This document shows positions 4,101-60,331 of a stretch of 64,000 nucleotides of DNA, piece after piece. The position numbers were made by a program, and so were the translations under genes. Each line of letters starts with the position of its first letter. Positions within the stretch are counted from its first letter, which is position 1. Source of the stretch: Podarcis melisellensis. Lineage: Eukaryota. The notes beneath the pieces were generated by a model that ran no database searches, was not told where the DNA came from, and worked only from the letters and a program-made list of their open reading frames with translations. The stretch is taken from assembly GCA_964234715.1 (NCBI GenBank), contig OZ174281.1, one strand, 5' to 3'.

Positions 4101-7100
4101 AAGGTCCTGAGGCTCCAGTCTATTTGTTTGATGGAAGGGGGAAAAGAGACTTTTTTGTACTATTGACACTTCTGTTAGCCTGATTTGAAACTTGCATTCC
4201 AGGGTAGTAGTGACATTAGGCAGGTATATTATCAAAATGGCAATTTGGTTTGGAATATTACTAAGAGTAAGTAAATTACAGTCAAGCTATGGATTTTACA
4301 AACTTCATGTTCTTGCTCTTTGTAAAATGTATTTATTTAAAATAAACCTGTTTTTCATCACGATTATTGGCTGGGGAGAATGGCGAGTGGGGCGGGATAT
4401 GGTGGCTGTTGAACTTGTGTTTAATTATTTTAATAGCACCATTTAGCAGAATTCTATACAAGCGTAATGTGTTGTGTGTGGCTTGTTGTGAAAATCTCTG
4501 AGAAGTATAACTGTACACCGTGGCTACCATTTCCCAATGAAAAACTTAAAAGTTATGCAAATGAATTGTGAAGGAATGTATTCAAGTGTATCTATATGTT
4601 GGGGTGAGAGCATTATTTATTCACTAATGCTTTAAAGCATTATATATTTTTTGGAATTTAAAAGCCAGAACCTACAGGTTGCTTTAGACATGAGATTTGA
4701 CAACCTTGACCTGTGCTTTTTCTCCATTCCCTCCCCCTTCCCCACCCTCCTAGTCATATATCCCATTTCTTCTGGGAGCTCTTGACTATACAGTTCTTAC
4801 CTGAAGAAAACCTAGCATTAAATATTGTTGTCCAAATGTCGTATCCTTCCTGCCACTTTCATACTTGGTAACCAAAGGTCAAGATAGGCCTTTCTGCATG
4901 TATGAAATTCTTCCTAGGATTTCCTAAGCAATGGAGGCAAGGAAGAAAGAATACTTCCAAGTGCTTAATGTCACCATTGGAAAGGATTACCTTTCCTATA
5001 ATTCAGTGGCCTGTGTTACCGACCTATTTTTCTTGTTTGCTTTTTTCTTGTCTCTCTTGAAATTACACATTTTTAAAATTATATGTCCACTTATACATCC
5101 AAATTGATCCTCCTTGCTGGTTGGGGGAAAGATACCCAAAATTGTACATGCATTCTAAAACGTACTTCTTTTGAAAGTAAATTCCATTGAGTACGATAGA
5201 ACTTTTAAAGCAAGTATCATTTCCAAATAAGTATGTTTAGGATAGAGATGTAAATATGTTTATACACTGCCATCATTTCTGAACCAAAATAAGGTTCTGT
5301 TTATTACACCAGTTACTTGTGGAGGGATAACCACTGGAAATTGTAGATGTAAAATTAGCCATAACGAGGATATTGATATGATTTGAGACTTAAGTGTTTC
5401 TATTACTTAAACATTTCCCCTAGTGCAGTATGTGTTTCATTGTACTGTTATGCAGACACAGTTTCATAAGGCTTTATTAATTTTATGTTTCTTGATGAAG
5501 GACACAGTGTATTTTACTCCATGTACTACATTTAATATGCCTAAAGCATGCATTTATTTAGAAATATTGAAAATACTACGTAGTAAGGCCCTGAATTGTA
5601 CTGTTTGAGAAAATTCAGCCATATTTTTACTTCTGAATTGTTGGAAATGTTGAAAAACATATTTTCTATTTCCAATTATATATTTAGACATATTGTTTCA
5701 TTCTTACACATTCTGGAGAGCCAAAATAGATTTTGCATAGAAAAGCGCAGAATTGAGAACTCTAATTTAGGAATAGTAACTCAGAAGGGAGATTGACATT
5801 CAAAGAATAGACCATACTGACTAGATATTAAAAGACATTAGATTACTTGACTCATAATATAATCTGAGGAATTCCATATAGACAAAAATAGTAATTACTG
5901 TTGGTACTATCCCTGAAACCTGCCCACCCCCACTCTCATACTGTTGTTCTAAATGACTTTATCTGAAATGACCAATTTCTGAGCACTATAGCATTATATT
6001 CTTAAAAGGGAGGGGACAAAAATTCATAAAATTCCAATTGGCCTGTAAACCAAAAACATCTGTGCTGAAGCAGATTGCTGCTTTTTTGTGTGTCTAGCCA
6101 AAATTGGGCAAAATTGAGAATAGTCAACATGAAAGCGTACAGACACATGTACAAAGCAAAATTACATATTAGAACTGTCTTACAATATTCTTTAAATTCA
6201 GGCAACTATCTATATAGTAGTTCCCTTTTCGTGTGCTATCGGTTTACACTCTTTCTTTGTTGATGTATCACAACACACATGTTAATCTGCCCTGTCACTA
6301 TTGATGATTTGTAGCAATCTGAAATTATTAGATTTACTACAGGTATTCCAGACCTCAGTGGTGCACAGAGCATTGTTGCTGCAGCAACTGCCTTTGGCTT
6401 ATAGGGAAAGTGGGGTAGCATGTTCTGCATGTTCCCCGCAGGCCTGTTCAAATGCTTCCTGTGATATATAACTTTCAACTTTTTCAGAGCACAGGTCCAC
6501 CTTTAACTCAAGCATGCATTTGGGATCAGCTTGTTAATTATTATTCTTTACCATAGATATGTATGGTTGTAGTGCTGCAAGTGTAATTCACCTGAGGTTA
6601 GGCTGCAACATGGTCATAGGTCCCCATCTGCCCAGCTGAAGACAAATGATATATTAAGGATGCCAACATAACACTCATCATAACTAAAAATGTTTAAATT
6701 GTTAATATTTTGGCTGAATATTTTGCCCTACCAGCCTCAGTTCCACTTGTATGATAGCCGTTGTTCATGGGACCACACTGCCGGATTTGGTGATTGTGTT
6801 GGTTACTAGTATAATAGCTCTGTACCAGCATAGCTACATGGGTTGCCTTCTTCAGCCATCTCACGGTGCAAGTTTTAACACAGCAAGTTGTGGCATTGCA
6901 TTGTGACTGTATTGAGTATTGCTGTAGCAGTGTAGTGACCCACATTACTGACAACCCTTTATTTATGTCTGGAAGGAAGTATGAGAATCTTGTCCACAAA
7001 TTGCTATCTCTCGTATCAGTACAGCAGGAATTAGAACTTCATGAAAATGGTTGAAGAACAATATATATTTTCCAGTGTTATGAGCTGAGCCTTCTTTTTC

Positions 7101-8767
7101 ATTGGGCCATACAGGCATCTTACAATTAAGAGATTTCGTAACTGCCCCCTGAATTGTTGCTGAATTTGTCTGTACTGTGATACGTCTAATATGTAAAGAT
7201 AACATTTGCAATGTTGATCCAGGATTTCTTGAATGGCTTTGTGCTTCCCCTTAATTCTTGGGCTGTAAGCTGCAAGTCTTTACAGCTTAATAACATCAGT
7301 TCCTCTGTTACAAACTCTGTGCTGTAATGTAGAAATTCAAAGAATAATACTTGACTCCAAAAGTTAGCTTGTTAGTGCTGTCAGTATTAATGTGGCAATA
7401 AATGTAAATGGGAAAACTAAGATGATTTTTGGGTTCCGTTATACTTTGTGACTTGAGTGATTTTCAGTGTAAATAGCATTATATTGGAATGTTATTTTTA
7501 AACTGCAAATGCAGTTTAAATCTCAGCATGATGTATTTCCCCATATGTATTTTGATTTTTTTGTTGTCCCCTGTTGTTTTGTCAAAGGTCAGGATTGGTC
7601 CCATTGGGAGGAAAATGTGGTCTTGTGTTTCATTTTTTTGCCTTGGGGTCTACATGCAGCTTAGCAAGAATTATGTATGCCTTATTTGTTCATGTTTTCC
7701 TCTGGTTGTGTGCATGTCTGGCGTTTAAATGTACTTAGCAATACTGTCGCTACAAAAAACCTGAAATTCAGGGACTGCAGATTCTTTTAGTTTATCTCCT
7801 TAACATAATCAAATGGTGAAGGAAAGTTTTAGGAGACCAATGAGAAAGTTTGACAGAAGATGTGAATCTTAGAAAATTGAGAACAGTTGTAAACTTAAAA
7901 ACTAAAACACCTCCCTCTAATTTAGGCAGGTCGGGCTCTTAGCATGCATCACAGTTCACCTCAAGTATTAGTAATTATGCTAGTTTAGTAATTATTGGAG
8001 ATGAAAGAAACTCTGTAAGATGTGAATCCTTCTAAACTTCAGTAGCTTTACTTTGAGCCGGAATAATGATCAAGCAGTAGTTAGCTATATGCCTGGGGAT
8101 TATGTTGAAGCAAAAAGGGGGGGGGAGGAAGAAGACTTGAGCTAAACTTCGAGTATCTTTATTACTATACTTCATAGTTTGCATTTCCATTTAGTATTCC
8201 TGCTTTCCAGAGAGAGGACAGAAACTCCATGTTTTGCTCTTATGCTTTGGTATAACAAACAAGGCAAGGCATTTTAGACTGATAACATAAAATTTAAACT
8301 GTACCACCCTCAGTATTAAATGATGGACACTTGGGTACCCCAAAATCTGTGACCCGAGGCAGGCTGCATCTCCTTGGCTGCTGGTGGTGGTGGGGGGAAC
8401 TATTTGGGATGTCTGCTGAGGCACTCACACACTTGGAGCGCAAAAGGGCATTGAAAAGCCTATTTCTTCATTGTGATAGAAGATGGGATTATTCTAACTG
8501 AAATGTAGGCATTATTTTATTTAAATTATTATTATTTGCTGGCATTTGTTTGGCATGCCGTGCAAACAAAGTATCAAAGCAAAACAGCAAGATAAAATAC
8601 AAATGAGTAAAATAAATTGAGGCAAAATAAAAAAGGAGAAACACAACATACAAACAAACATTTCCTGAAGAGCTCATCCAACGATACAGTAAAAAGAACA
8701 AAACCTAACCCATACCACAGCAGAGGCTAATGATCGCAAAATCTTAAAACTTGAAAAAATACTAAAA

Positions 8768-13204: not shown

Positions 13205-14000
13205 TATGCCAGTTTGAGTCCCTTCTAAGAAAGTTGTGTGTATAAATAAAACAGAGCGTTTAACGTGTTTAATAATCGTATTTTCAGTTTATATTCTACC
13301 TTTTCTCCCAAAGGAGATCAAAGCGGCATACAAGGCTGAGGTTTGCCATGGTAGTGTTGTATTCTTTCCAAGCCCCATCAAGTGCTGGTTTCCCATTTAT
13401 ATTACAAGAGCCAAATTGTTTCACATAAATTAACTCCCTCACCATGTTAATTAAAATCAGTATCATGGCAATAGCAACAAGTCCTGAATTTTCTAAATAA
13501 TTAAACACACTCCTCTTCCATATAAAACAATGTACATATGCTTAATTAACTCATAGATCTAGCTGAGAAACCCACAATTTGTGATCCACCAATCTGAACA
13601 CAACTGAAGTGGATCTTATTGTGACCTGACAAGAACTTGACAGGCAGTGAAATAGCTAAAGCAGAGTGTATTGAGCTACTGATAGGGTGTCATAAGTCGT
13701 TGGTGGGCTTTGCCGATCTTAGCTGTGCAAAATTGATAAGATTTTTGACTGTAGGTAGAATGAGTTTGCTGTGTGCGCGAATGTGTGAAGAGATTTATTT
13801 ATGTGTATACTTATTTCATTGCAGAATGGGTGGTTTTTGTGTTTCCTTATGACAGTGTTTTGATGCTGAAGTTATCTTTTTTTATAAACTGCTTACCTAC
13901 CTTTCTTGATTAAAGCAATGCATTTAACAGACAGGTGATGTTTTCCATGTTATGGTCTTTTTTCAACCTCAACACATGGCATTTACCAAGATACTTTTAT

Positions 14001-14082
14001 TTTATTGTAACCAATTTTATTGTAACCAATAATCAATTTGTAACCAATTAATCAATTTATTGTAACCAATTAATCAATTTGT
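14001..14082. repeat. Imperfect tandem repeat, four TTGTAACCAAT cores
   Basis: Directly visible units of ttgtaaccaat(t)aatcaattt. Confidence 0.85.
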
Positions 14083-16164
14083 CATTCACTTAAAAGCAAA
14101 ACAGTTAGTTGCTTGAAATATCTTTAATTGGTTGAAACCCTAATGATAATCAACTTCAGCTTGTGTGGTTCAGTGGACAGAGTATTTTGGGGGAATCCAG
14201 AGAACATTAGATGCTAATTAAAATAGAACCCAACTGTGTGCTTAAATTCCATACATCTTAATGGGATTTGAACTTACCTAATTTCCTCTGGTAGTATCCT
14301 GTGAACTTGTTGGTTAGCCTTGGCTACATAACTGGTTTTTAGTCTTGGGGCACGTATCTGTTTTCAACAGAATTCCATGAAGTTCCCTCAAGGGATCGGA
14401 GTAGTAGAAAGTTCTTCCTGAGGAGTTCTACCATGCCATTTTCAAGGTCAGGATCTTCTCCAGTAGCAGCAGCCATGGACTTCTTAGTCTTAGCCCAGTA
14501 AACTGGGTGAGTCAGTGATAGGATCTCCCCAGCTTGTGGCTGGGCTGGCTGAGTTGCAGACCTGTCTTGGAGAAGCAGATTGGGGCCTTCTTCAAGGACC
14601 AGCCAATTTGCCTGATGTGATCTTAACATAAATAATTGTGAAACACTTAAAACATGAATAGACACGAACACACTGAATTGAAGTGGTACTAAATGTACTA
14701 AAGGAATCTAACCAAAAGTATATCCATGGTGCAAAACCTTTAAGCTATCCTTTCAACTATGTTTGTAAGTATAGGTCACTATGCTTCTCATAAAATTACT
14801 ACTATAAAACAGCCTCATCAGGCTGTGAATATCCATCAGAGTTCTTTTTTTGGGGTGGGGTCAGGGATGCTAACCCGATAGTTCACAGTTTAGTTCTTAA
14901 GTTAAAGTAATATGTATGAGAGGAGAAATTATGCCTCTAAACTGAATATGGATCAGTTGAAGGGAACCGGCTGATGATGCCACCAAGGGAGTAGTAGTAA
15001 GTGGAACTGAGCCCTCAAATTGTAGTGGTTTTTTTTTTTAAAATGAAAATATTTATGAAAGTTGGGTGTAATTCTAGCGGTATCTGGTCTTGGTTATTGG
15101 CTTTGTTAATGTTTCTTGTGTGGTATGAGAGTCACTCTATATTCATTTTAGAAATATATAAGACCTTTTAAGTTTTTCTTCTTTTAACACCTTTTTTTAA
15201 AGACAAATATTCAGAACCTGATCCAACAGTTGGTTCCTAGTTTGAAGTTGAGTGCAGAGTCTTACATATTCAGCAAACATATCATGTGAGAGCTGTGTGC
15301 GCATTAAATGTACTTGGAGTTTTGAACCAGAACTGGACTTGATTATTCATTAATACAAATATGATCCAGTGCATTTGTATTTTGGTCATTTCTTCCTGGA
15401 GTACAGAATAAGAGTATATGTTTTATGTGCCTAGTGGTTAGGTAGGATTAGGGAACAAATAGCATAAAGAGAAGAATTACATGGCTTGTTTATTACTTAA
15501 GGGTGAAAAGTATTTTAAATTCATTGTCTTAGTCCAGGATGGCAGAAAAGACTGGCAACTCCTTGAACGCTTGCTACTGTCTCAACCACCAACCCTTTAC
15601 AACTGGCAACTTTTAAAAAATGGGCATTCTGTGTCTGTGTGTATAATTGTTGTCACCTTATGAAGTAGGTTACTACTGCTATGATCTGGACTTCATCTAA
15701 TCCAGGAAAGCCCCCTGAATTTCTACAGACATGGCTCAGCTGTAACCAAGTCCCTGCTTTTAAAGGCTGGGGCTACCCAATAGAGTTGAATACCCCCTCC
15801 CCAGCGCCCCACTTTATTTCTTTATAGATTATTAACAGGTGGTTACACTGCAAGCCCACACCAATGTGAAACACATATTTTGTATCCCATTCAGTGTTGC
15901 TTGGTCAAGCTCAGAGAGAAAACCAACAGCTTTCAAAAGCAGTTTGCTCCTTTGCTCAAGATTTCTAGTTCTGAGTCAAAGAACTCTCAAGACATATGTC
16001 CATCTTAAATTGCATTTTTGCATATTATTGTGCCTTCAAATCTTTTATGTATTCTGATGAAATTAATGGAGTATCTGCTCCATTGTCAATTGGTCAGTCC
16101 TTCCCTGGATGTCAATACAAGCCATTTTGCTACTAAATCAGCTCTGCAGTACACAGCCCTAAAC

Positions 16165-16291: not shown

Positions 16292-19200
16292 CCTACACCT
16301 AGAACTAGGGATGTTAACTTTTAAAGCAACCACCATATGGTTAATAGGTAAATTTCTATCAACGCTAGTTAATGTTGGCTAGTATTGTGGCCAAAGTAGC
16401 TAAATTTTAGCCATGTTTCAGTCTGCAGCAGCGAAGAGAAGGGGCGGGGTAAATGTGTCTGCTCTAAATTCCTAGTCCAGAATTAAGGGATTGGAAAGAT
16501 TTGGCATGTTCCTGCTTCAACACTGCTAGTGTGGTCTGCTTTGTTTGGGTCCTTGATCCTGCTGTTAAGCCTCACTTCAAGCTCTGTTTTCAGCGAGTTG
16601 CAGTTTTGCATTAATCAAGAACCTTTATTTTAAACAGTGAAATATGCTCATCTCCCATTCAACATCCTGAAAGTGAGGAGAGTTAACATATATTTCCTGT
16701 TCTTAAGTGTCTTTCTGAAATGTGTCTTCTCTCTCTGAAGGGTGGAGGGGGTGGGTGGGGGGCAGTCTGTGCCTCTTATTAGCTTTACATGCACAGAGGC
16801 AGAGGAGAGAAAATGCATAAAGATACCTCCCGAAATTACTGTAATTTGTAGATGCTAAAATAATGGCATACACATATCACTTCTGTTCTGTCTGGATAGC
16901 TCTGTAAATTGTGTATTGATTATGCTAATCTGCCTAGTGTCTCTATTACTTGTCTGCTGATACTACTCAAACATGCAGATTGAACACATTTTTCCTCCTG
17001 CAAAGTTGTCATTCTTGTGGGAAAAGACTTGTGTAAGATGGGTGAAAAGACCAAATAACTTCTAATCTTTATGCATAGGAGGGTTTATAGAATAACTATT
17101 TATTGAACTGCAGGAAACGCAAAATGCAAGTCACCCCCTTCTCCACCCCCCCAAAAAAGAAAGAAAAAAATGAGGACAGTTGTCTTAGGTTAAAACCTTT
17201 CCTCCTCTTCTACCTCCCAGCAACTATTGTTGCTGTATTAGGCTTATTTTGTTTCACGTTCCTTAAGGAAACCATTTTAGGAAGGGTACTAAATCAATAG
17301 CAATCTATTTTTATAGTTTATTTTGGGATGTGTGGCTTCTCTCTTACTTTGTTTAACAAGCCGAAAATGGCCTCAGTCATTCAGGGCAGTAGGTATCTCT
17401 AAAAAAATTATTAACCTGCCTCGTGAAAAAGAAAATAAGACTTTTTTCAATTATCCAAAGCTTTTATTTTTATTATAGTTTGTAGTAGTATAAATACAAT
17501 AAATCACAGCCTTTGTTCTCAAGGATTTGTTGTAAAGTGTACATTCACATTCTTGCTGTGTTTGTACAACTTCACAGTCACCCATTACTTCCCTTATTAA
17601 GTCTCTAATGCACATTTTTGCCAGTGGCCACTACTTTCCTAATGCGGAACAAGGCTGGCTCTCATTTAAGAGGCAGCTTAGCGAATTGCAGAGTATGTCG
17701 TTATAAAATGAAGGAGGAATAATGAATTTTGTTCCCTGGGCTTTATCAAATTCCTGCTCATGTTTAGAGGCCATCCCATTTTCATAGCTTGCTCCCTGAG
17801 GGGCCCTTTCATAGCATGCTCCACAGGAGACCTGTTCAGTCTGCCAGACTATTGCTCTAGCGCTGAAACCGAAAGCGAGAGAGAGAGGTGCACCCTCCTC
17901 AAAGCAGGCGTTACTGGGTGCTGAAGAATCCTAGGCCAACACTGTTCCTGGGCTGCGGAAATCTGCTTCAAGTCTATTATTGGCCTTCTCATTCTCACCT
18001 GCTACAGTTCAGATTTGGGCACTGGGGCTACTGTACTCCACAGGTATCAGGAGTGATAAAAAAAGCATATCTGATCACGACAGAAGAACTAATTCACATT
18101 CTGAGTGGCAGTTGTGCTTCGCTCCTCTACGCAGAAAGAGTAAAGGGAAGGGGGGCATCTGAAACATGCAGCGGTGATGGCTCCCTGGCACATGTCTACC
18201 ATGCATTCCTGAGCTTTTGAAGCTCTTCTCCCCTTTGTGCTATGTGTGTACAGGCTCCAGAACTCTGGTCTGTGCATTGACTGTGCCTGTAGTATTGCAA
18301 AAGAGAATCAAGGAACGGTGTTGGCTTCTCCCTACAACCCTGTTCCATTGCGATTACTTTCTCTGCCTTTGTCTTTCCCAAAGCACGTCTGGTGCAGTAT
18401 GCCTTTCGTTGCTTCTGTTTCATTAATCCCCAAACTACCTACTTTCCTTCCTTTTCCCCCAACCTTGTTCCGTGTGTTTTGGAAGAGATAATTGCCTGTT
18501 CTGTGCCCTGTAGGACACCATCTACATTTCAGCACTAAGCCAACATTGAGTAGTGGTGGCAGTAGCAGCAGCACTATCACAATAACATTTTGCAAACTTA
18601 TTTTTTTCATTGAGATTGAAGAAACACTGCTAAAGAAAACTTAACTTAAGGATGATTCAGTATGCTTTGTGTTTTGATAGGACTAATTCTGCTTTACTTA
18701 TTTATTATTTGCTTAGTGCTGAAATGCTTTTATATGATTAATCTCATAAGATAAGGCATGAGAAATTGAAACAACAGCAACCAGTACTAAACAGTGAGCA
18801 CGAAATTCATTTTACAAAGGCCACTAACTTTGTGGTGGTCTTAATGCGCGAGGTGGCAAAGCATCAGGGCATGTGCTTGCTCCATTCACAGAAAAGTGTG
18901 CCAGGCCATGAAGTGACTACTCAAAAGTAGAAAAATCAACAACTGCAACACATGACCCAGGGTATGTGTCTCCCCACTAACCCCATGCCAACATATGAAA
19001 GATGCTCCACTGATAACACCTCTAAGGTCACAGTGTATTGCATATTCTTGCAGATTATAAACCTTTGCTGTAAGACCTTCAGAAAACTGGATGGAATTCT
19101 TCCTGTGTTAGTATCTCGGGCAAAGAAGAGAGCAAACTGCAATTCTTTTGTTTTGGATGGAAAGTGGGGGGAATTATTTAGCACGCAGCTGACTTCCATC

Positions 19201-20756
19201 TTGTGTGCAGTGAAACACATTGGAATTCTAAAGCCATTTTTTGGCTTCAGGCAGACTTATGGCATTATGGTATGATGGATGAAGGCCTATCACTCTGCAG
19301 CCTTTGGTGTGGTTGATTAGCAGGTGCTAGTGATTAGTTGACTGTTGTGGACTGAATTACTTATAGACATTCTGTTTCATTGTTTAGCAGTGTTGGCCAG
19401 TGCTGGCAGTATTTGGATTTCATTGGGGCACTCTCTCTCTTTCTCTCTCTGTTTATTTAGCAAAATTGTGTCTTTTGTCTCCAAAGTTGTTCAAGGCGGC
19501 TGTTAACTATTGCTCCAGTGCAGCCAAGTATTAAGTGTATTGTATTGTTTGTTTGTTTACCGAGGGAACTGAGAAAACTGATTATAGTCCACACTTAACA
19601 GTTTTTAAAATGTGTTTCCTGAAGGACACACAAACAGTAATAGAAGAACAGTAGTCCCTCTCATACCATTTTTCTGTATCTGTGTATGCATGCAATACAG
19701 CGTGAGTGCCTTTCTAGCCAGGTGCGCTGTGCAGTTCTAAGTTCAAAAGGGAACAATGAATAACAGAGGTGTTGGTGTTGTTGCCTTTGAAACTTATAGT
19801 TCTGCTGTCGGCTCATGCTGCCCCCACATTTTCCCTTGATCTATCTTTAGGAATCAGTTCTTCTAGCCCACTGCCTTTCTCTGGTTTAATTGTTATTCGT
19901 TTTGAGGAGGACATAACCATTTTAGGAAGATGCACTGAAGCATATAAACACAAGGATGAAGTCAGCACAACATACCTGTAGCAGCTAGCCATATTTTGCA
20001 ATGCTTGGTGCTCTGTTCCTGAGGGTTAGCTTCAGTAACTTTCCAGCAGCCAAATTTGGAAGTACGGACAAAGGTTAACAAGATCTTAACAATTGCTACC
20101 TAACCCACATCCGTCACCACAGGCAGGATACGAAAACCACAGCAGCTATTATTAAAAAATTGTGGCGTTGTCAAGCTAACTGCTAAGCTCATTTTTGCAG
20201 TTTGGGCCTTTTGAAGAGGTTTTATATCAAACATTGTGGCATTATCTTTTGGGGGAGCTTTTTCAAAATTATCACGTAGGATAATGTCTGAACAGACATC
20301 TTGGCCAAACTTTGTATCTACAGTACTTAATAAGAGAGATTTCCTATCGCCTTATAGGTTGAACCTTATATTTGTTGCAAACAATAGAAATCAGAACGGC
20401 ACCGAAGTATTTTTAAAATATTTACCTAAATTAGAGATAATATCGCTCAAGTCTTTGACATTATAATGAGTGGGATTCAACTAACCTATGTTGCTCTGCT
20501 GTACAGTGTGCAGTATAGTTTGATTCTACAATTCCTTGTAGAATATAAACAAAAGTTTGCTTTGTTCATTTATTTTAGAAAACCATAAAGAGCAGAACCT
20601 TTGACAAAAAGGAGAATGACACCCTGAGAAATGCTGTCTCACTAGTAATATACTAACTCTTAGGTCTGATTTGGAGATAACAAATCATGCCTTTAACAGA
20701 ACGGCCAAGTGTGAGCCTCATATTCTCCTTTGCCCTCATTCATGCCTTAAGTTAGG

Positions 20757-20855
20757 CCAGTGGTGAGCCAACATTGGACCCTCCAGATGCAGCCGGACTA
20801 CAGCTTTGGCCAGCATGGCCAGTGGCCAAGAATGATGCCCAGCAATACATGGAAT
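20757..20855. mobile_element. Old palindromic hAT-type MITE, left part; the right end resumes at about 21369-21382
   Basis: cagtggtgagccaacattggaccctccagatgcagccggactacagc...ggccagcatggccagtggccaagaatgatg, interrupted at a TA. Confidence 0.6.
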
Positions 20856-20857
20856 TA

Positions 20858-21366
20858 CCGCATTCTTCGCACCAGACCATAAGACGCACCTAGTTTTTGG
20901 AGGAGGAAAAGAAGAAAAAAAATGTTCTGAATCCCATAAGCCAGAATAGCAAGAGGGCTCTGGCTTCTGGGATAGCCTCTTGCTGTCCTGGCTTATGGAA
21001 TAGCTGCGCGCAGCCCCTCCTGGGCAGCGGGATGAAGGCTCCCCCTGCCCGGAAGAGGTAGCGCGTGGCTAAGGCAGAAACCACAACAGCAAGCGATCCC
21101 TTATGGGATAGCCACTCGAAGCCTCTTGAGGGCAGCAGGAGGAAGGCTGCCCCAAGAGCCGCACTCCCTTTAGAGAGAGCGCAGAGCATGTGTGCGGCTC
21201 TTGGGGGCTTTTCCCCGAGGAGGGAGAAGGGCTGCCCTTCCACGCGGCTCTTTAAAGGGAGCGCTGAGCAGAACCTCCCGCCTGCATTCACTCCATAAGA
21301 CGCACACACATTGCCCCTTACTTTTTAGGAGGGGAAGAGTGTGTCTTAATAGAGCAAAAAATACGG
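20858..21366. mobile_element. Non-autonomous Tc1/mariner-superfamily (Tc2/pogo-type) DNA element, about 510 bp
   Basis: TA|CCGCATTCTTCGC...GCAAAAAATACGG|TA imperfect TIRs, internal repeated ccataagacgcac motif, and a GC/CpG-rich interior. Confidence 0.75.
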
Positions 21367-22784
21367 TACATTGCCTGCCCCTCAGGTAGACAAATTTGAA
21401 GCTTTCAGCCATAGTTTGTAACAGTCCATAGTTTTTCATTCCATTCAAAACCATACTTGGGTGAAATAGGAAACTGCTTTGTTACAAATTGTGATAACTG
21501 AAAACTTTAAATTCCCTTCCCCTTGTGCTCAAAAAAGTGATGGGGAGGCAAATGTGCAGAAGCACTGGGCTCATAGCTCCTCTCTCTCATAACAGTAAAC
21601 CATGGTCTGTCAGTATGTCTGAGTTGAGCCTCACAGTGCCTACTGGCCAAAAACCCAACAGCTTCCACACATTTGGCCCAGTAGCTACTACAAAACATTT
21701 TGCAGAACAGCAACAACTGTTGTCCCTGTTTCATCATCACAGTGTGGATCAAGAAAGAGTTAAAATAAGTAATTAGTTGTGCCCAGGAGCCACCAGTGGG
21801 AGAGAAGTAGAAGCAAAGTGAATTTTGGATCCTGCTGAACTTCTGAATATTTACTCTGTTGGAATAAAATGGGCTAAATTCTCTTCTAAGTGGGACTGCT
21901 CCAAGCATGCCAAAAATGTCACCACTGTTCTTGACAAACGCACAGCATCTATTTTTTGAATGCTCTTATTAGAGCTTCCCACCGCTTGAGTCTAATTTTG
22001 TGCAGCGTGAAGGGAGGAACTCCCAGGGCAAGGAAGGCTTCTGTGCGTCATCCCAGTTTGAAGCAACGTAGGCTCAGGGGGAGGTTTCCCTCACCTGCAT
22101 CTCTGGGAAGGGACCCCTAAGTTGAAGAGAGCTCCACTAGGTTCTGAACGTCACAGGCTGCTCCATTTCTCTTGATCTTGCTATGATGGAGTCTAGACAG
22201 TTTAATCCACCATAGTGGCACCCTTCACCCGCCTTTTCTGCACTTCCTCCAGATCTCTTGGATGGGCAAAGAGATTTGGGAAGTTTTGAATGACTTGCTA
22301 GACTGCCCAGCCCTTTCAGAAAGGGTAACAGGAAATGGCTAACACAGAGATTGACTGTGCCTGCACTACTCACTTGCTATGGGGAGACCTCACCCCCGAA
22401 CAATCTGAGTTCTTTTCCATCTTTTTTTCTCGTGGTACTCTCAACTTCTGCTCTTTGTGATGCTCCTTTTAACATTTCTCAAAATGATGGGGCGGATAAG
22501 GATGGATGTAGTGGATGCGGATGGGTTCAGAGAGCTTGCAGCCGTCTTCCCTCCAGCATGGCAATCCTATGGCTGTGGCAGGCAGCGACAACCCCAAAAT
22601 ATTTGAACAGAAGCTACCCAGGCCAAAAGTGTGTGCGTGTGTGCATGTGCACATGCATGCTTATGCAATGGGATTGAAATAAATGGGATTTCTCTGCCCC
22701 AGGTTGAAGTGGGATCCTGGGAGTTAGAATGGCAAGGACAGGAACTCCCTGGCTAAATCTTCTTAATTATATTTTACAACGCTC

Positions 22785-23421
22785 TACATCTTGGCTGGGG
22801 AACCTTTTCCAGCACAAGGGCTGTGTTCCCTCATGGAGAACCTTCTGGGGCTGCCTGCCAGTGCTGGGCTGGACCAGAGGCAAAAGTGGACAGAATGATG
22901 GATGTTACTCTTACCTTTTATATTGGAGGTTGCCTCCAGCCATGCTAAAGTTAGTGGTTGACACAGTTGTGGACAGTGGTTAGACACTGCTGCTCACCAG
23001 ACCCACTGAAAACTGAGTCATTGCCGCTTACCAGGGCAGAGAGTGGGGGGGGGGCGAGGTGGTGGGGAGTTCAGCACTGTGCAAAAGCAACAGGGCTCCT
23101 GCAGGCGCATTTGCACAATGCCAACCAACTTGCTGCCCCGCCCCCTAACTCTTTCACCTGGTAAGCTGCAAAGACTCAGCTGTCAAGAGGTCAGGTTAGC
23201 ATCACTTCACTGTCCATTACTGTACACACACACACAGCATCCATGCAAGCAGGAGGTATTACCGCAGTTCAAGCCCATATTCCAGTGAGGCAGTACGTAA
23301 AGAATGAATGTATGGAGCAGGGGGTGGAGTGGGACATGGCCTGGGAAAAGACTCCCAAGGGCTAGAAAGAGAGGTATGGAGGGACATCTCTAGCCCTCAG
23401 GTATGAGTTTCCCCAATCTGC
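22785..23421. mobile_element. Degenerate hAT-like non-autonomous element
   Basis: Ends ggctggggaacctt and gagtttccccaatctg form imperfect inverted termini around a GC-rich interior. Confidence 0.4.
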
Positions 23422-24474
23422 TCAACATCATTCTCTTACCATTAGATCCCACTCCACCCCCAATTTCTCTTTTAATGGTTGTTTCCATAGAGTAGCTAAA
23501 ATCACAGTGCAGCATAAAAGTTGTACCAGGGAATAATACCGCTTAATGTATAATGCCTCTATGGAATCCTTGTCTTATTAAATACCTACTAGTATCACAT
23601 CCAGCCTGTGAGACTTAAATATCTAACTAAGCAAGCGTTTATATTTTTTGCCAAGACTTTAAGACTGCTCCTCAGTAGAAGCTTGATAAACTTTTAAGCC
23701 CCCACTCCTTAAACCTTAAATTGTCACCTCTTTGGAATGGGAGAAGAGGACTGTTCTCTTCCTCCTGTCCATTTAGAGCTGGAGCTTGATGGGAGAGTCT
23801 TTTTAAAAGAAAAAAAGAAAAAAAGAGTGGCAATTCTCCTTTATCTTGAGTCGCATCCCTTACAAATTGCTCTAGTGCCTGACACTGTTGCTACAGCCAA
23901 ATGCAAATTACAGGAATAGCTACAGTGCAACTGACCATAGCCCAGTCAAAATGGCAAGGGTAGCTGCAGTCACAACTCCCCAGTCATGATGAATACACTC
24001 GATAGATAACTTTCGTATTCAGAGTCCTAGATATTAGGATTCTGATAGATTTTATTTTATTTTTGATATTTTTTAAGTGGTAGTGAAATTCCAGATTGAT
24101 GGTTTAAGAATGCTCTTGCCCTTGTGCTTACAGGGGCTACTACGGTTGGTGGAGCTTTTCAAGTAAGAACACAGTCAAAGACGGATTCCCTTCTGCAATG
24201 ATTTATTTGGCTTCTGATGCACAACATTTTTTGAGTTGTCCCATAAAGCCACTTATCCAATGGACAAATAGATGCATTGAGATTCCGTTTAAAGCCTGGC
24301 TCCTTTTCAAATAGATCTTTTGTTAGGCAGAATTTCTTTTTATTTATCATGGAGTGGGAACATTGATGGCCTTAAGAAAGGAAGGTAGCGATATGTGTTT
24401 GGAATACAAATAAGGCACTTACCTAATGGATCATTTTTCGTTTTGTTTGTTTGTTTTTTACCTTTCCTTGACAG

Positions 24475-24531
24475 TAGAAGAAAATGAATCGGAGGACCAG
24501 GGAGGTGTGGGACAGTCAGCTGTGCAGACAG
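24475..24531 (+). CDS. ZNF521: Probable alternative in-frame 57-nt ZNF521 exon, (V)EENESEDQGGVGQSAVQT
   Basis: Branch-like CTAAT at about 24423, a T/C-rich tract of about 40 nt, CAG acceptor (AG 24473-24474) and donor CAG|GTAATG at 24532. Phase 1-1, no stop, purine-rich. K-VEE start parallels ZNF423 exon 2 (KVEEGEASD...). Confidence 0.78.
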
Positions 24532-26574
24532 GTAATGCTGAATTCCTACATTTATTTTGCTTGTCTTGGAACAGTGTGAGAGATATTGAGTCCACTCTTA
24601 CCTGATTGAACTCCAGCTCAAGTATTTGGAAGGAAGAAAAAGCCCGTCTTTCCATTTCTCTCTGTTCCCCAAAGGCCTCCTAGCTTCCCAGGATCTCTCT
24701 CTTTCCCTCAACCAAGAGGGCTTCGGTTTGATGGATGGATGACCGTCTTCCGGAAATATGGACCCTTTAATATCCACGATGCCTTATTTGTAAGCAGGAA
24801 TCCACACTAGCTCCCAGCTAATCACAGCTCTTTGAAAGAAACTTTTCATATGAAACGACAGTTAGGCTGTGAACCAGACCTCAGCTCAATTCCATTTTTT
24901 TCGGCCCATTTATATTCCAGTAGCCCTGCTTCCCCTCACAATGTCTTCCCCACCCACACAGCAGATCTGTCAGGCCACTTTAAAAAAACTTCCGGAAGTT
25001 TGAAAAGGGTGTGGGAGTTTGGCAGAAGGAAGGGACTGAAATGGGAATTAGCTTGTGCCTGCCGATCTGGCGCATGCACGCTTCTGGATTGTGGCCAGTA
25101 TCTCTACAGGCTAGTTGCTTTCATAAACGAGTGTATAGTTAAAATCTTAATCCGTTGAATTTCTTAGCAGCCACTGATCCCTACATTTAAGTCACTGGGA
25201 GTTTTGTAGCTAAATCCTTAGTTCAACCAGCAAGATTTTAGGTTGGAAATCTGACCTGTTCATTATAATGAACAGCTATAAGGGGGTTAATAGCATGTTG
25301 TTGGTTACAGTGGTTCCCTTTTTATTTTATTTTTTTGCTTCTGGTCTGAAAAAAAATATACTTGGTTTTTACAGTTTAAGGAATGATTCAGTCTTTTGGT
25401 ATATTTGACTACTTATTCTGCGAAGTAATAATTAAATAGCTTTTGCTCAACGAAATGATCATGCTCTATGCTCTATTGATACTTGCTTATGGATCTTTAG
25501 ATGAGGGTCTCAAGAAAATCCTAAGGGGAAATTCTGCTTTCATTGATCGTGTTTTACTTAGACTTAAAAAGCCCCCCCTCCCATCGCAGCTAATGTATAG
25601 CTTTTAGTTTGAAGGATTCCTTTATAAGGTGATTAATAGTAATGTAAGCTTATTATATGCGGTAAACTGATTATTAGTACATTTTTCATCTCTAGTAAAG
25701 TGGATTCATCTCTTTGTTGTTGTTTGTGCTGTCTAACTCTTTGGACTCTTGTATATACTATATTTTCCTTCTTTGACACCCGCATAAAAAAGACTGCTTG
25801 TGACAAAATATGGAACCATATATGGAATTTTCTTCTACTTTTTTCTGGAAATGTCTCTAACTACTTTGGAGAAATGAAATCCTGTTAATGTTTTAGTGGG
25901 CTGCGTTTGGAAAATATGTTGTGAGGAAAGGAACATGTTTTCCCAAAATGTTAGACCTGCTTTGTCAGTTTTTAATGGTGTTTGCCATTAAATCTTGGAT
26001 GATCGCACGGATATGTAGCTGATTGACATGCTTGCGTAATAGCCTAACTTGTAACATTACACTGGCTCATCTGCAGGGCAACTTAAGGATTTATTTCTGG
26101 AAAAGCAAAGCTCAGCCAGGTATTTCAGTGCATTTCAAAATACTCCATACAGATCACATCTCCACCCCTATGAAGATCTCAGATGTTGTGTTTTTCCCTG
26201 AACAAAAAGCCCTCTGCTTTTGATTATTATACACCTTTACTATTTTATAAAGTGGAAGAAAACAATTGTAACTATTTGAAGCATCAGCAGCAATGGGACA
26301 TCTTGGGCAGGCACACTGTTCTGAATCTTTTGAAATAATGAATTAATTAACATGGTTAGGAGATAGTTATGATAGTATTATAACTACATTGGCACAAACC
26401 AGAGTTGCTCTTGTAGTCAGTGTTTAAAGTGAGCTTGCAAACCGTGGTTACAGGAGCATTTGGTCAATTTTATAACCTATTGGCAAAAGTTAAGGACACT
26501 TCTAATTGAACAGCAGTACTGTGATATTTTAAACCAGTAAAGAAACCATGGTTAGCACTGATAATAATAAGTTC

Positions 26575-26660: not shown

Positions 26661-27102
26661 TAATAACTGATAAAAACTATAGAGTGTTTAAAGCAAACCA
26701 TGGCAGGGTGTGAGAATACCCTGCAGAAAAGGGGGGAAGGTTACTCCTGAAATGGGGAGATTCATTTGAGGTTAGTCGAATAGCTTCATTTCTAGAGATT
26801 CTTCCGATTATGCACAACTTAAGCCGTAGCCTTTTTCTAAAATGTCACTCATGTTGGAATGTTGTTTAATAAAGCACCCATGGGCTCACACCATGTGAGG
26901 TGCGTGGAGTTTTGAAAAACATTTACCAATGTCTTTATTGATTATTGATTTGTTTGTTATTACGGCTTTTGGGTGCCTCGTATGCTGCAACACTTTTAGC
27001 CTTCAAGCAGATACAGAAAATATTCAGCTGTTTCACACAAAAGCAGCGTAAGAAGCCCCATACATGCTGCTAGAAGTTTTTCTAGTAAATCTTTGTATCA
27101 AA

Positions 27103-27242
27103 NNNNNNNNNNNNNNNNNNNNNNNNNNNNNNNNNNNNNNNNNNNNNNNNNNNNNNNNNNNNNNNNNNNNNNNNNNNNNNNNNNNNNNNNNNNNNNNNNN
27201 NNNNNNNNNNNNNNNNNNNNNNNNNNNNNNNNNNNNNNNNNN
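27103..27242. other. N-run, 140 nt
   Basis: Direct. Confidence 0.99.
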
Positions 27243-27503
27243 AGAGTTTTACTTCACCGCTGAACTGCAGAAATATTCCTTTCCTGGTCATAATTATAAC
27301 CACATGATCTCTTAGTTTTCCTTTCTTTTGCCAGCACTTTTCCATGCAGAAGTGGCTTGGAAGGAGGTCCATTAAAACGCAGTCAAATGGACTGGAAACT
27401 GGGCTTTCTTCCTCGTAGTTTGACATTTTAGGCTCTTGATCAGCTATGGATCCTTGTTGCGTGGAGAGAAATATTCAAGATGAGTTTCAGGCATACAGAT
27501 TGT

Positions 27504-27640: not shown

Positions 27641-28136
27641 AACCAATCTCTTACTGGAAATTAATTGAAGTCCATGGGTTTATTGCTGCTAACTCTTTTA
27701 AGCCTTTTCAGTTTTTCATTTTCCTCCAAAGTTGTAGTTTTATTAGACCAAGTTACAGCAATAACATCCCTTATGAGGAGAAGGAAGAGAAGGAGAAAGC
27801 CACCTGCCAGGACACGAATGTAATGGGGAAAATACCATTTATAAATAACATTTAACATAATCAGGAACAGAAAACAGCAGTTCATTTATGTACTATATTA
27901 ATGGTTAGAATTCCTTCCAGAGCCAAATCTTTCCCCCCTTTTGCATTAGGTAATCTTATAAAGGGATCTTGCAGATGGGACAGTGATATACAGACTTGCT
28001 GACGTATTGAGCTTTACTAGTGTATTGTGGTTTGAGACCCTGAACTTCCAGCAGTTCATGCTGGAGATCCAATTCAGTGATGGACAATCCACACACAGCT
28101 GTAGGCTTCTATGAGCGGATTGTCCACCCATACCAT

Positions 28137-29180: not shown

Positions 29181-31831
29181 TTTTTTTAAACTGTAGTTTG
29201 TAGTCTGTATGGTTACTGGGTGGTGGGAATGGAAGCATGTGGCTATTTTCTGTACATCCAGATTGAGATGTTGAATGAGCAGTGTTCCCAGAAGATACAA
29301 CTATGGGAAGTCATTAACTAGTGTGAAAGGCTTGGAATATATTGGTGGAGCCAACCAATAGTTAGGGTTGCCACTGAGCCAATGCTTCATCAAAACCTAG
29401 CCGTAATAAATGTGTGTTGCCATACGTAATGTAGACTATGGTTCTACCTGCCATTTCTAAAACCATTCAGCAGCTTCCAAGTATCTGTGGCTTTGTTTTA
29501 AAATGGAGAGGTCTTTATGGGGGGGGGGGGAGAGAGAGACAGTGGTAGAAATATATGCATCAAGAGAGGCAGAGTGGCAGAGGCTGCCACAACTCATTAC
29601 ACAGAGGCTGTGACCGAACCCAGGTCTCGCAGGTTTTCCCCCTTAAGAGTTGACCTAAAAACTACCGTAGCATTTTGCTAGAGCATGCATTCTGAAGTTG
29701 CAGCAGAAGGGACTAAGTTGCCTGACTCCCGTCCCAGTAGGTTTGTATTTGTGAATGCATAAATGGAAGCAAGTCTTCCCTCTCCCCCACAGCGACTCCC
29801 ATTATGTAATTTGAAAAAATAATTCTAACATTAATAGTTGGTTCTATTTTTGTAAAACGCATTGTCATAAGCAGTTTTTCACGTTTTGTATCCTAAGCTC
29901 TGTGCGCGCACCTGTCTGTTATTCTATTGGATTCTTGTTAAGGGCCAGCATTCATGAATAATAAGTGCTGAGCGTTGTTGCATCTCTTTCTCCCCTCTAG
30001 CATGCTACTTAAAGCAGAGTCAGACTCTACCCTTATTTTAAAACAAACAGGTCTGTAAACTTTATGTGCAGCATTTAAATAGTCGTGTTAAAATTCAGAC
30101 CCAGTGCCTGCATTTCCCCGAGTGCTGTCAGTTTTATGAGATGAAACTGGGAGCTTGAGCTGAACATCTAATAGTATGCATTGTGCACATGCTGCCTTCC
30201 AACAAGTGTTTAATGATGTCGGGGTCAGTTTGCAACAGTTAAGACAATTATTTCTTTTCCTCAGCTGCTTATAACCTAGCGGTATTTTTAACTGCTAGGC
30301 TAAGGTAGATGTAAAGGTTGGGAATGTACTTACAAGTAAGTTTGGGATCCAAGCAGTGTGTTAAAGGGAGTTTAAAGGGGCTTTTCTCTTCAATCAGCAT
30401 GTGTTGTTCTGGGGTAATGTAAGATCCAAATGAAACAATATGGAAATTAGCTGGTACATGCCAGTATACTACTTCTATACCAGGACTGCTTCTTATGAGA
30501 GTCATATTCATTTTTAAATTATGTGTATACTGCATGTATTATACCATGGGGACTCACTGTCAATCACAGTTTCCTAAAGAGTGTATATGTAGTCAATATT
30601 TGACTAGAGAATGATGCACGGTGGATTGTGCCTTACTACTGGTGGAATGTGAGCACCTTTTGTAACTGAGTTGCTTTCCCATGTACTATGGCAGCCTTAA
30701 TTACCACACACACTTTCCAAAGGGATTTTAAAGGGAGCTTTCCATATGCATTTAACATGTATAAGCTGCTTGTTAGTAGACGACATATTCATAATACTTG
30801 CCAAATATAGGTGCCACCATACCAAAAACACAAAGGATCATACTTTTACATGCCATTCACATACACAACCTAGAACTTGAAATATGTCTTTATACAAACA
30901 CATTAACTTCTGCACCTCATTCACACATGCAGACTAAACATATACCAATATTCAGACACAGTGTTTACACATGTACAATCACTTTGCCATTTGGGTTTCT
31001 TGGTTCCTCATACAGATTTTTCCACTGTTTACATAATTCCAGGTATGAAACCACATTTCCTTTATTGAGTTTTAAGGATGAAGAGGGTCATCTGCAATTT
31101 GGGGGGGGGGTCTCTTCTCTTCCATAGTACTTAATGGAGCTTGATCAATCGGTTAATTTTTGCGGCCAAAGAGGGTGCTCTCTTATCAGGCAAACTGTTG
31201 AGGAGAGCACTCTCTCGCAACTTCCTAGGGAGAAGATGTTGATGTGTTCCTGCCTTCCTGTGCTGGCAAACCCATTCTCTTTCCCCATACAGCTTAGTGG
31301 GAAAATGATGGTCTCTAGAGGGGAAGCTTTCTTGATGTCTCCAGTCCTGCCATCAGACTGAACTGAGGTTTATTGCTATGCTAACCTCTGTAGGAGAAAC
31401 TGCTGCTGCATCTGAACAAATGTTGAGTTTCAGTGGATGCAGAGCTTCCACCCGAGTCAGTTTTAGGTTCTGCACCTCCACCTCTTCTCAAGTTCCTCTC
31501 TCAGGTCTCTTTTTGCTCCAGTCAGGTGTTTGTTTTCCAGTGGGCAGGAGGAAATTTATCAGATTTCTTATAGGCCCAGGGGACTATATATATGCAACCT
31601 TGATCATGGCTTTCTACTTTTGGAGGAAGGTTGATAGAAAGATACAGCTCCTAGTATCTGAAGGGAAAAAAAAAGATATTTTTAATACCTGGTGAACTAG
31701 ATAGAGCTCTTAGCTTTTCAGTACTATGTTTTCAAGCCTTTTTGGCATGGGTAATCTTCTGAAAGTTCACAAGAAGCTCTCTTCAATTATGATCTTTTTA
31801 AAGTCTTAAACTTGCTTGTCCCTTTTGCGCT

Positions 31832-32992: not shown

Positions 32993-33172
32993 ATCTGAAC
33001 TGTAAACTAGAAGACAAGACAGAAGATGGAGAGTTGATAGATTGTAAGAAAAGGCCGGAAGAAGGGGAGGAGTTAGAGGAAGAAGCTGTGCACAGCTGTG
33101 ACAGCTGCCTCCAGGTGTTTGAGTCACTGAGTGATATCACAGAGCACAAGATTAATCAATGTCAACTGACAG
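32993..33172 (+). CDS. ZNF521: ZNF521 180-nt coding exon, (D)LNCKLEDKTEDGELIDCKKRPEEGEELEEEAVHSCDSCLQVFESLSDITEHKINQCQLT; first atypical C2HC zinc finger
   Basis: Acceptor tttattttctttcAG ends at 32992 and donor CAG|GTAAAC starts at 33173; phase 1-1. The peptide is near-identical to the recalled human ZNF521 N-terminus and has C-x2-C-x12-H-x4-C spacing. Confidence 0.96.
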
Positions 33173-40630: not shown

Positions 40631-43600
40631 GTTTTCAGGGTTTATATCATGCCTTCCCACCAAGGTGCCAGAGCAGCTAACAACAAACACATGTACAATC
40701 AAAAAGGTAGAAGAAAGCAATAGCAATAACACTAACCTTACACAGCCTTTCCCGTTTTTCTGATTAGGAAAGGGAGGGGAAGTAAAAGGGGGAAAGTGGC
40801 TTAACTTATGGGATGTTAGAGTCAATAGGTAAGAGACGATATATGGCAGAACAATTGCATATTAAGTACTGGTTGAACAATGTAAGTATTAAGAAGATTT
40901 TTGGTGGGTTGTCATTCTAGCTCAGTGTTAGTTTAACCAGATTTGTGACTTCACATTCTATTTCTAGAGACAGAAATTGTATCCAAGTGATAGTGGGGAG
41001 TTTTGCTTTTTTGTATCTTGTGCCTGGCTGGAAAAATCTATTACAAAATACAGTTAACAGAAATGCATTAGAGGGAAAGTCAGAGCAGTTATTTCATACG
41101 GTTGCGTTGGAGTTTGAGGGAAGGGATAGGATTTAGTAGTATACTGTTAATAATCAGTATTAATGTGTACACCATTCTGAGATGAGGGCCATTTTGCACA
41201 TTATATTCAGGCAAACGTGAATGTGCAAAGGAAACTGTAGCCAACTGTGGTTCCCTGACAAGTTTACTTACATGAGTCACCTTTTTGCAAGTGCATGTTT
41301 GCCACAGTCACACTTTACGGTGCACCTCAAAGCATGATAGTACAATTAGAAAATGCAATATGTTCCTTTGTGACTTAGCAGCAAGTTCTCTCTGAGCCTC
41401 TTGTGTGTTCCCTGTTGCTTCCCAGGGTAGCTGGGAAGAAAAATTATGCTGTTTCTGCCAGTGAGCTGCAAGTGAGGGAAGAATGTTCCACAATCATGGC
41501 ACCACTAACAGTGCATTGGCAGAGACTTGCAAAAATCCTGGGGCTCCTGTTCTAGGGTTGTTGCCAAGTTCAGAAACTGCGGCAAACACACAAGCTTTCA
41601 AATAAGGGTGCAGAATTGAGGTCAGGGTGCAGTCACTGGAGTAAACTTGGTAGAATATCCTTTCAGCTGCTCCTACTTAACTCCCTTGAGTTAAAGCACC
41701 GCGACCACATATTGCTTCTTTACACAATAGTTGCTTAAACAGAATTTGGCCCTGCTGGGCATGCATTCTCTTCGTCCATCTCCTGCACCTTAATGAACTT
41801 TTGCACTAAATCCCAAGATGGCTATTTAGGAAGATTCCAGTGGATGAACGGGTGATGCATGTGTGGCTTCATATACCAATTATGTTTATTATACTGTATT
41901 AACTTTATGTGTTAGTCTTATATGATTTTTTTTAAACAAATTCTGTTAGAAGTACGGTTGGTGTATATTTTGTGCCGTGTCTTCATTCATCAGGATGACT
42001 AAGAGGCTGCAGAGATTTTATTTTTCTGACAAATCTGTCATCCGATTCCAAAATGGCTGATGACAGAAGAAAACTTTGTTAAAGAAGTAGAACTTCATGT
42101 TCTTAATTCTTTCTTTGGGCTGAAAGGTCACCATCCTTGGTAGGGGAGATCACCTGGGAATGGTGTAAATGTAGTGGAGATCTCTGACCTGTTAATAAGC
42201 ACCAGGAGAAGGAGATAGGGATCATTCCACAATGTGCCCTGGGGGTACTTTTCCTTTAAACTTCAAGCTGTGTAGCTGGAACTGTTCAACTTTTTATTTC
42301 TTTCAGTTTTACCTTCAGGGGAAAATTGATCGATTTGGAGATGATTATTCCATAATCTCTGAATCTCTCTTTCTCCACATTGCAGTGGGAACTCCTTGAA
42401 GTTTAAAGGCATTGTGTTTCCTCAGTGCATTGTGCAGTGAGCCCAAAGAATGTAGGGGGACAGGAGTATTCTTTAACAGATGGATGGTAGTAGGCATGTT
42501 TGGAACTGTAATACTCATGTTTTATACTAAGGATATATCTTAGCTTATGTTGCATCCTTCCCAGCAATTTCTGGGATGGTGTTGGGATGACAGAACAAGA
42601 TAGCAGGGACAAAAGCTTGTGCTTGTGTTGTGAACTGAGATATGAGAACGTTGGTTACAGATCTTTTAGCAAATGATTTGTGCTCCCCCCCCATGAAACA
42701 ACAATGAAACCATCCCTCATAATTTTGTTTTGCCCCCTCCTTGATATTTGCTTCATAGCGTTAAAACATTTTCACATAAGATGATGTAAATGATAAAAGA
42801 GTTGCTGAAATCTCATTTGTTACCAGAACAGTATGATCAATGACATTCTCAAGCTCACTGCCAATATTTCACCACTGTGAATCTGTATCTGCATATAAAA
42901 CAATTCATGGGGAGCTCACTGAAATAAAAAGCAGAGGGGAAGTTTCCCTTGACTTTTCTGTCCACATTTGATTCACCCGCTCAACGCCTACTAAAAGTAT
43001 TTTTATGGATTCATTCTTAATTCCTGAAGTTGGAAATACATAGCGAGGACACCTATGTATACAATAACAGAGCAGACTGACAAGGTGTCAAATTCAGGAA
43101 AATGGTGGTTCATGCACTTTTTTTTGCACAGGGGGAGGGAAGCAAGCTAAATAATGTATCAGAGAAATGCCTGCTCTTTCACTGCTTTTCTAACTGTGAA
43201 TGGAAATGGTGTGTCTCATTTGTTTTTACTGCTTCATTCCAGCGGGAAGTCCAGTTTAATGACTGGAGGAGGGTTGGGTGTCTCCCGTGGAGAAGGCACA
43301 GGAAGGGTCAGGTTTTTCAAACACAATGCAAGCCCCTTTACCAGATGTAAAAGTTAACAAAAGGAAAAGTGGGAACAGCAGATTCTGATTATTTACTTTC
43401 TCTTGATGAAAGCAAAGTTCAGCTTATGTGTCTGAAGTGCACTTTAATAAATTACGGCACAACTACTGCTTAATAAACATTCTCTGAAACCTGAAAAAGC
43501 ACACTGCCGTTGCCACAAATCCTAAAATATATGAAATTCTCAAAGTATTCTGAGCCTCGGATTAAGTTCAACCTTCGTCCTCAAAAATTCCAGACTGTCA

Positions 43601-58288: not shown

Positions 58289-58370
58289 AAAAATAGTTAT
58301 TTGGTTTGTGTGTGTGTGTTTCTGTGGATGTTTGAAGACTGCATTATGCCCAAAGTGTTCAGAGAAGGCT

Positions 58371-58679
58371 NNNNNNNNNNNNNNNNNNNNNNNNNNNNNN
58401 NNNNNNNNNNNNNNNNNNNNNNNNNNNNNNNNNNNNNNNNNNNNNNNNNNNNNNNNNNNNNNNNNNNNNNNNNNNNNNNNNNNNNNNNNNNNNNNNNNNN
58501 NNNNNNNNNNNNNNNNNNNNNNNNNNNNNNNNNNNNNNNNNNNNNNNNNNNNNNNNNNNNNNNNNNNNNNNNNNNNNNNNNNNNNNNNNNNNNNNNNNNN
58601 NNNNNNNNNNNNNNNNNNNNNNNNNNNNNNNNNNNNNNNNNNNNNNNNNNNNNNNNNNNNNNNNNNNNNNNNNNNNNNN
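58371..58679. other. N-run, 309 nt
   Basis: Direct. Confidence 0.99.
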
Positions 58680-58723
58680 TTTTTAAGTGCTATAATGCAG
58701 CTGAATAATGATGAATGCAGTAG

Positions 58724-58728
<5 letters not shown>

Positions 58729-58778
<50 letters not shown>
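58729..58778. repeat. (AG)25 microsatellite
   Basis: Direct. Confidence 0.97.
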
Positions 58779-58781
<3 letters not shown>

Positions 58782-59869: not shown

Positions 59870-59985
59870 ATGGGACCCTCTAGGTCTTGTGGACTACAGT
59901 TTCCATCAGCCCAAGCAAGGATAGCCAATAGTCAGGGATGATGGGCGTTGTAGTCCAAAGTGGTGGTCTGGAAGCCATTACTTTG
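59870..59985. mobile_element. Old palindromic hAT-type MITE
   Basis: tggactacagtttccatca and tgatgggcgttgtagtcca form inverted arms. Confidence 0.65.
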
Positions 59986-60307: not shown

Positions 60308-60331
60308 TAAGAATACAGAGATGGGCATAAG

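Follow-up and report, generated by a model that had tools for sequence, protein, structure and literature searches.

An ancient acidic exon between the NuRD motif and the first zinc finger of ZNF521, read from the lizard Podarcis melisellensis

The 5' end of ZNF521 and a short in-frame exon

The stretch of DNA analyzed here (the window; 64,000 nucleotides from Podarcis melisellensis) holds the 5' end of the ZNF521 gene, on the plus strand. The coding part of exon 1 occupies 502-541. It encodes MSRRKQAKPRALK at 502-540, an N-terminal peptide of the MSRRKQAKPR type that marks a FOG/SALL-type NuRD (RBBP4) motif and that is identical in two snake records, and with its last base, G541, a split codon begins. 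The exon 1 donor, read directly from 542, is GTAAGT. The next coding exon, at 32993-33172 (180 nt, phase 1/1), holds the first zinc finger; it opens with (G)AT, which gives D, followed by LNCKLEDK, and its peptide runs as D-LNCKLEDK...QCQLT.

ZNF521 and its paralogue ZNF423 have been studied almost wholly in mouse and human, where the NuRD motif of ZNF521 adjoins the first-finger exon. The NuRD-interaction domain (NID) of ZNF423 has been described as SRRKQAKPRSVK (PMC3804944), and the motif in exon 1 of ZNF521 matches it. According to a review, the NuRD motif sits on a short exon, and mammalian ZNF521 recruits NuRD through this N-terminal motif (PMC4695665). Our literature search found no paper describing the ZNF521 exon considered below, which is referred to here as the VEE exon.

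The VEE exon is a stop-free coding segment of 57 nt, in phase 1/1, at 24475-24531. Read together with G541 (G + TA), it begins with V and continues as EENESEDQGGVGQSAVQT, and its last base, the G at 24531, opens the next codon. Upstream of it are a candidate branch site, CTAAT, at 24423-24427 (48-52 nt 5' of the acceptor) and a pyrimidine tract with acceptor at 24434-24474, of which the tract takes up about 24434-24469 and the end reads TTGACAG, with CAG closing at 24474. The donor, GTAATG, is read directly at 24532-24537. The first-pass annotation had proposed a 57-nt in-frame exon here, with a CTAAT branch, a long pyrimidine tract, CAG and GTAATG, and a direct reading of the window bears this out in its coordinates, both phases and each of the signals. 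The order of the three exons on the plus strand (502-541, 24475-24531, 32993-33172) is also that of the corresponding loci of Crotalus (L001), Columba (L002) and Aldrovandia (L003).

The 32.4-kb intron between exon 1 and the first-finger exon (542-32992) was scanned for stop-free segments of 30-200 nt in phase 1/1 that follow an AG with at least 16 of 20 pyrimidines in front of it and run up to a GT. The scan returned 34 segments, a single one of which has a donor of the form G/GTRA[GT] (the slash being the exon border), and this one is the VEE exon. Taken alone, the splice signals are therefore suggestive, pointing to the VEE exon without deciding the matter; it is cross-species conservation, and not the signals alone, that places the exon far beyond chance.

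Orthologous exons in snakes, birds and teleosts

Orthologous exons with AG/GT borders and phase 1/1 are present in the genomes of Crotalus (L001, 34711-34767, 57 nt), Columba guinea (L002, 21058-21117, 60 nt) and Aldrovandia (L003, 14692-14751, 60 nt), and in the orthologous loci exon 1 ends AAAG/GTAAG ahead of the VEE exon. The lengths of 57, 57, 60 and 60 nt for the window, Crotalus, Columba and Aldrovandia differ by exactly one codon, and all four exons are free of stops. The Crotalus exon has the same position, length, phase and GACAG context as that of the window, and 15 of the 19 codons specify the same residue (12 identical and 3 synonymous), leaving four amino acid differences; in this comparison the window species is a more distant squamate, for which about 7 kb of the first 36 kb can be aligned. 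The bird and teleost exons are likewise orthologous and in the same phase but are 60 rather than 57 nt long, and the peptide encoded by their second half differs.

The conservation is unevenly distributed. Codons 1-9 (27 nt) are nearly identical at the DNA level across teleost, bird, snake and lizard, silent positions included, whereas in the second half of the exon the amino acids vary freely and the frame is kept. Against the rattlesnake, blastn finds 24447-24536 (86.7% identity) as the sole alignable block within 20000-25066 of the window; it spans the exon together with the donor and the final part of the pyrimidine tract. In the blastn comparison with the pigeon, ten conserved blocks fall in the window's first 36 kb, among them the exon block, which extends over 24430-24587 (78%). 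The 16 intron bases 3' of the exon, consisting of the donor GTAATG and the next 10, are identical in window and pigeon, and Crotalus, Columba and the rodent relic described below all retain the GACAG context of the acceptor. The position aligned to CTAAT reads CTAAC in the pigeon, use of this site as the branch remaining a candidate assignment. As judged from these alignments, the pattern fits a translated exon under additional RNA-level constraint, and neither chance nor plain non-coding conservation would account for it.

It could nevertheless be argued that the segment is a conserved non-coding element, such as an enhancer, which resembles an exon by chance and has been mistaken for one through its homology to ZNF423. 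Conserved non-coding blocks are numerous in the ZNF521 intron, and the 34 loosely defined in-frame pseudo-exons returned by the scan lend this some plausibility. However, conservation with the rattlesnake starts inside the pyrimidine tract and ends five bases beyond the donor GT, the AG and GT do not vary across the four lineages, and lengths of 57, 57, 60 and 60 nt without a stop are maintained. We consider a non-coding origin of the conservation highly improbable, and further observations against it are given with the snake records, the rodent relic and the lizard RNA.

Other parts of the first ZNF521 introns are also conserved between lizard and pigeon (71-87%), namely 6007-6141, 7955-8116, 16802-16984, 17229-17520, 27243-27503, 27641-27876 and 29571-30277, of which 27243-27503 is in addition 92% identical to the rattlesnake. 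These blocks are probably developmental enhancers of the locus. Runs of N in the window, at about 27100-27240 and 58330-63960, adjoin strongly conserved blocks.

The pigeon locus contains a second short piece of interest, ETQILETTSCMKPWGWRRRKR, encoded by a stop-free segment of 63 nt in phase 1/1 with AG/GT borders (L002, 19936-19998), 1.1 kb 5' of the VEE exon. In the Columba model it stands, in frame, behind exon 1 and ahead of the VEE exon; in other birds the models are partial and begin with it, and the Lamprotornis model reads it in a different frame. A search of the lizard window for a counterpart gave tblastn matches at chance level only, one of them with a stop, and no blastn block against the pigeon. 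The piece may be a bird-specific exon or an alternative-promoter exon comparable to that of ZNF423 alpha.

At the protein level, a word search with the peptide of the next exon identified three snake records that run from exon 1 through the VEE peptide into the next exon: Pseudonaja textilis A0A670XX93, Crotalus adamanteus KAK9403353.1 and Micrurus spixii A0A2D4MAK8. In these the VEE peptide reads VEENESEDQEGVEQSAVP(T/I), followed by DLNCK. Bird records carry VEE(N/S)ETEDQQAGVGHTAAQT ahead of DPNCK, as seen in Leptosomus (XP_009950808.1), Columba guinea (KAK2517945.1), Merops, Antrostomus, Colius, Pterocles, Mimus and Lamprotornis. In teleost ZNF521 the VEE exon directly follows MSRRKQAKPRSLK, and it is found in Aldrovandia (KAJ8395007.1), Gadus chalcogrammus (XP_056453650.1, RefSeq isoform X2), Hypomesus (isoform X1) and Ilyodon. 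Gene models of sauropsids and teleosts have the VEE exon as their second coding exon. Because gene prediction may carry an exon over from a homologous protein, these database models are not wholly independent. For the Micrurus spixii record the collection lists no genomic contig, and the published data for this species are venom-gland transcriptomes (PMC5488037); we therefore take the record to be derived from cDNA, which again speaks against a purely non-coding element.

Several claims of the first-pass annotation can be placed against these records. To call the exon hidden was too strong, as public gene models of related species already hold it. That it was kept in reptiles holds for the snakes but proves too narrow a description, since birds and teleosts keep it as well. 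A conserved orthologous exon in sauropsids, which had been named as a test, is found in snakes and birds, and the claim of an ancestral exon gains from its presence in the ZNF521 of Aldrovandia, Gadus, Hypomesus and Ilyodon. The exon is real and ancient, and it is already part of the public annotation of related species.

The nature of the same records raises another possibility, that the VEE exon is confined to short, truncated or unproductive transcripts and is absent from the full-length protein with 30 fingers. All exon-bearing snake records are only 96-107 aa long and acquire differing, non-canonical tails right after the next exon, and the bird records are partial fragments. This shortness is a sampling bias, because the protein word search returned only records of 0.55-1.75 times the query length, so that the exon-bearing records obtained are short N-terminal fragments. 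The window contains no long exon, and a search among representative proteins brought up N-terminal fragments and unrelated long proteins only. The frame, the one-codon length difference and both splice sites have been kept from teleosts to squamates, which would be hard to explain without selection on an in-frame product, and the ZNF423 paralogue uses the equivalent exon in a functional protein (PMC3804944). Confinement to unproductive transcripts is accordingly regarded as improbable, and inclusion in a translated ZNF521 remains our preferred reading.

The tails themselves deserve mention. After the first-finger exon, Pseudonaja continues with DIWENNQA, Laticauda with DIGENNQA and Micrurus with another sequence, which hints at truncated isoforms that would have finger 1 alone behind the NuRD motif and the acidic exon. 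A lizard counterpart of the DIWENNQA tail was sought in DIWQNN at 40838-40855; this has neither an AG acceptor nor a pyrimidine tract and was dismissed as a chance likeness. In Naja naja, gene model P0002 (corresponding to window 24484-24543) starts at an ATG inside the exon, at the equivalent of 24484, in the wrong frame (MNQRTRKEW...), and runs past the exon donor before the next exon. Although an artefact of annotation, the model marks the exon.

The ZNF423 counterpart and the exon-free form

The paralogue ZNF423 (Zfp423) has an exon that resembles the VEE exon of ZNF521 in following the exon for SRRKQAKPRS(V/L)K, in being in phase 1/1 and in starting with VEEGE.... In the stork Ciconia it lies at L004 45546-45605 (60 nt) and in the pupfish Cyprinodon at L005 24256-24318 (63 nt), in both cases in phase 1/1, starting with VEE (with an extra A in the pupfish) and placed directly after the exon coding for MSRRKQAKPRSVK, which ends AAAG/GTAAG. 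The Cyprinodon exon ends with SAVQT, followed by D, as in the window, and 11 of 19 residues are common to the two, including VEE, GG and SAVQT, the peptides being too short for a meaningful E-value of their own. The ZNF521 and ZNF423 exons fall into shared columns of an alignment. The paralogues differ in mid-peptide, where tetrapod ZNF423 has SDFxLxWDSS. As position, phase, size and motifs all agree, paralogy with ZNF423 exon 2 is supported, and the first-pass annotation's identification of the exon as the counterpart of ZNF423 exon 2 is upheld by the same position, phase and VEE start in the Ciconia and Cyprinodon loci. Both the alpha and the beta form of ZNF423 run into this common VEE exon.

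Mammalian ZNF423 keeps its VEE exon. Fragments of ZNF521 from narwhal, chimpanzee and Xenopus laevis show an exon-free form, in which K13 passes straight to D. A disabled relic of 61 nt is preserved in the rodent Neotoma lepida at L006 36784-36844, 6.6 kb 5' of the first-finger exon, and the pigeon exon with its flanks aligns to it over 167 nt at 72% identity (E 5e-18). Two bases are gone at its start and there is a 4-nt insertion; GAC TAA is read in phase 1 and a TGA in the ancestral register; the donor has GC in place of GT, and the acceptor GACAG survives. For this one rodent genome, the decay read from the sequence is consistent with loss of the exon in mammals. The exon had been claimed to be absent from the mammalian form, in agreement with the narwhal and chimpanzee fragments and with the merely relic state in Neotoma.

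The relic also has a bearing on the possibility of a conserved non-coding element. That it can still be aligned although disabled is what such an element might show; on the other hand, frame and donor have decayed precisely where the protein lacks the exon, as expected of a former exon and not of an enhancer. As a separate matter, 72% identity to the pigeon over 167 nt, pyrimidine tract and downstream intron included, is more than would be expected of long-dead sequence, and in mammals the relic region may have acquired, or never lost, a non-coding role.

For Xenopus laevis (L007), blastn, tblastn and pattern searches returned no homologue of the exon in an intron that holds runs of N at 13937-14027 and 15482-16102. 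The upstream peptide of the narwhal fragment (P0027) was considered as a diverged form of the exon and set aside, as it has no likeness to the rodent relic in any frame.

Use in lizard RNA and a possible role behind the NuRD motif

A search of sequencing runs with 24445-24561 made use of seven sampled words. Six runs contained all seven and are probably DNA. Two of the seven words were found in eight small runs guessed to be RNA, four of which, from two studies, carry the label of the window species; two of seven is the share expected if exon-internal words only were matched (27 of 87 possible words), which is an indirect sign of the exon in RNA. Two bulk RNA-seq runs, X17 and X18, were then mapped on 24203-24802 with 12% of the reads of each. 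X17 gave 0 reads in this interval at that depth, and X18 gave one read, which covers about 24473-24531 and then continues into unlike sequence; the flanking intron received no reads from the 12% sampled of either run. Two contig runs, X1 and X6, gave no match in the interval, under a filter that can drop contigs. The two extra bases at the left of the X18 read are those that a junction with exon 1 predicts, because exon 1 and the intron both end in AG. Its orientation (first mate, minus strand) agrees with RNA of the plus strand in the common stranded protocol. Being bounded by both exon borders (about 24473-24531), it is a further point against a non-coding element. From this one read, use of the VEE exon in lizard RNA is weakly indicated.

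It may be asked whether the VEE exon is an optional cassette at all. There is close to an even chance, falling slightly short of it, that it is constitutive in the lizard, in which case its framing as a hidden alternative isoform would be wrong. No squamate, bird or teleost record joining exon 1 directly to the next exon was returned, the skip form having come only from mammals and Xenopus, and ZNF423 includes the paralogous exon in both of its described forms. Against this, very few records could be reached, and the first 27 nt are conserved unusually strongly, down to silent positions, in the manner typical of exons under regulated alternative splicing.

When anatomy, orthologues, paralogue and rodent decay are considered together, 24475-24531 is best explained as a true coding exon of ZNF521, between the NuRD-motif exon and the first-finger exon, to which we assign a probability of about 0.88. 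We infer that this exon would be included regularly in full-length lizard mRNA. It would have been present before ZNF521 and ZNF423 split, with ZNF423 having kept its copy in all forms seen, and with the ZNF521 copy kept in teleosts, birds and squamates and missing from mammalian ZNF521 proteins.

Inclusion of the exon would place a stretch of 19 mostly acidic and probably unstructured residues, with a conserved S/T in ENE(S/T)EDQ, immediately behind the basic motif that binds RBBP4/NuRD. Human ZNF423 beta, with the NuRD-interaction domain, and alpha, without it, are promoter variants, and repression by beta is the stronger (PMC3804944). Since ZNF423 beta, which has both the motif and the paralogous exon, represses more, the insert in ZNF521 is most likely compatible with NuRD binding and would at most modulate it. 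It would probably not be needed for binding, because mammalian ZNF521 without the exon still recruits NuRD. The acidic insert is most likely a modulatory linker.

A more far-reaching proposal can be formulated, which we regard as unlikely on present evidence. The first 27 nt could act as an RNA-level code, in the form of a purine-rich splicing enhancer, making inclusion of the exon a regulated switch; the acidic insert with its S/T could then tune the engagement of RBBP4/NuRD, a layer of control that mammals would have lost.

In conclusion, the VEE exon belongs in the gene model of the lizard genome. The ancestral ZNF521 had an acidic exon like that of ZNF423 directly behind its motif, and the forms with and without it amount to a comparison offered by nature, in which the effect of the flank of an RBBP4-binding peptide on the recruitment of a co-repressor can be addressed.
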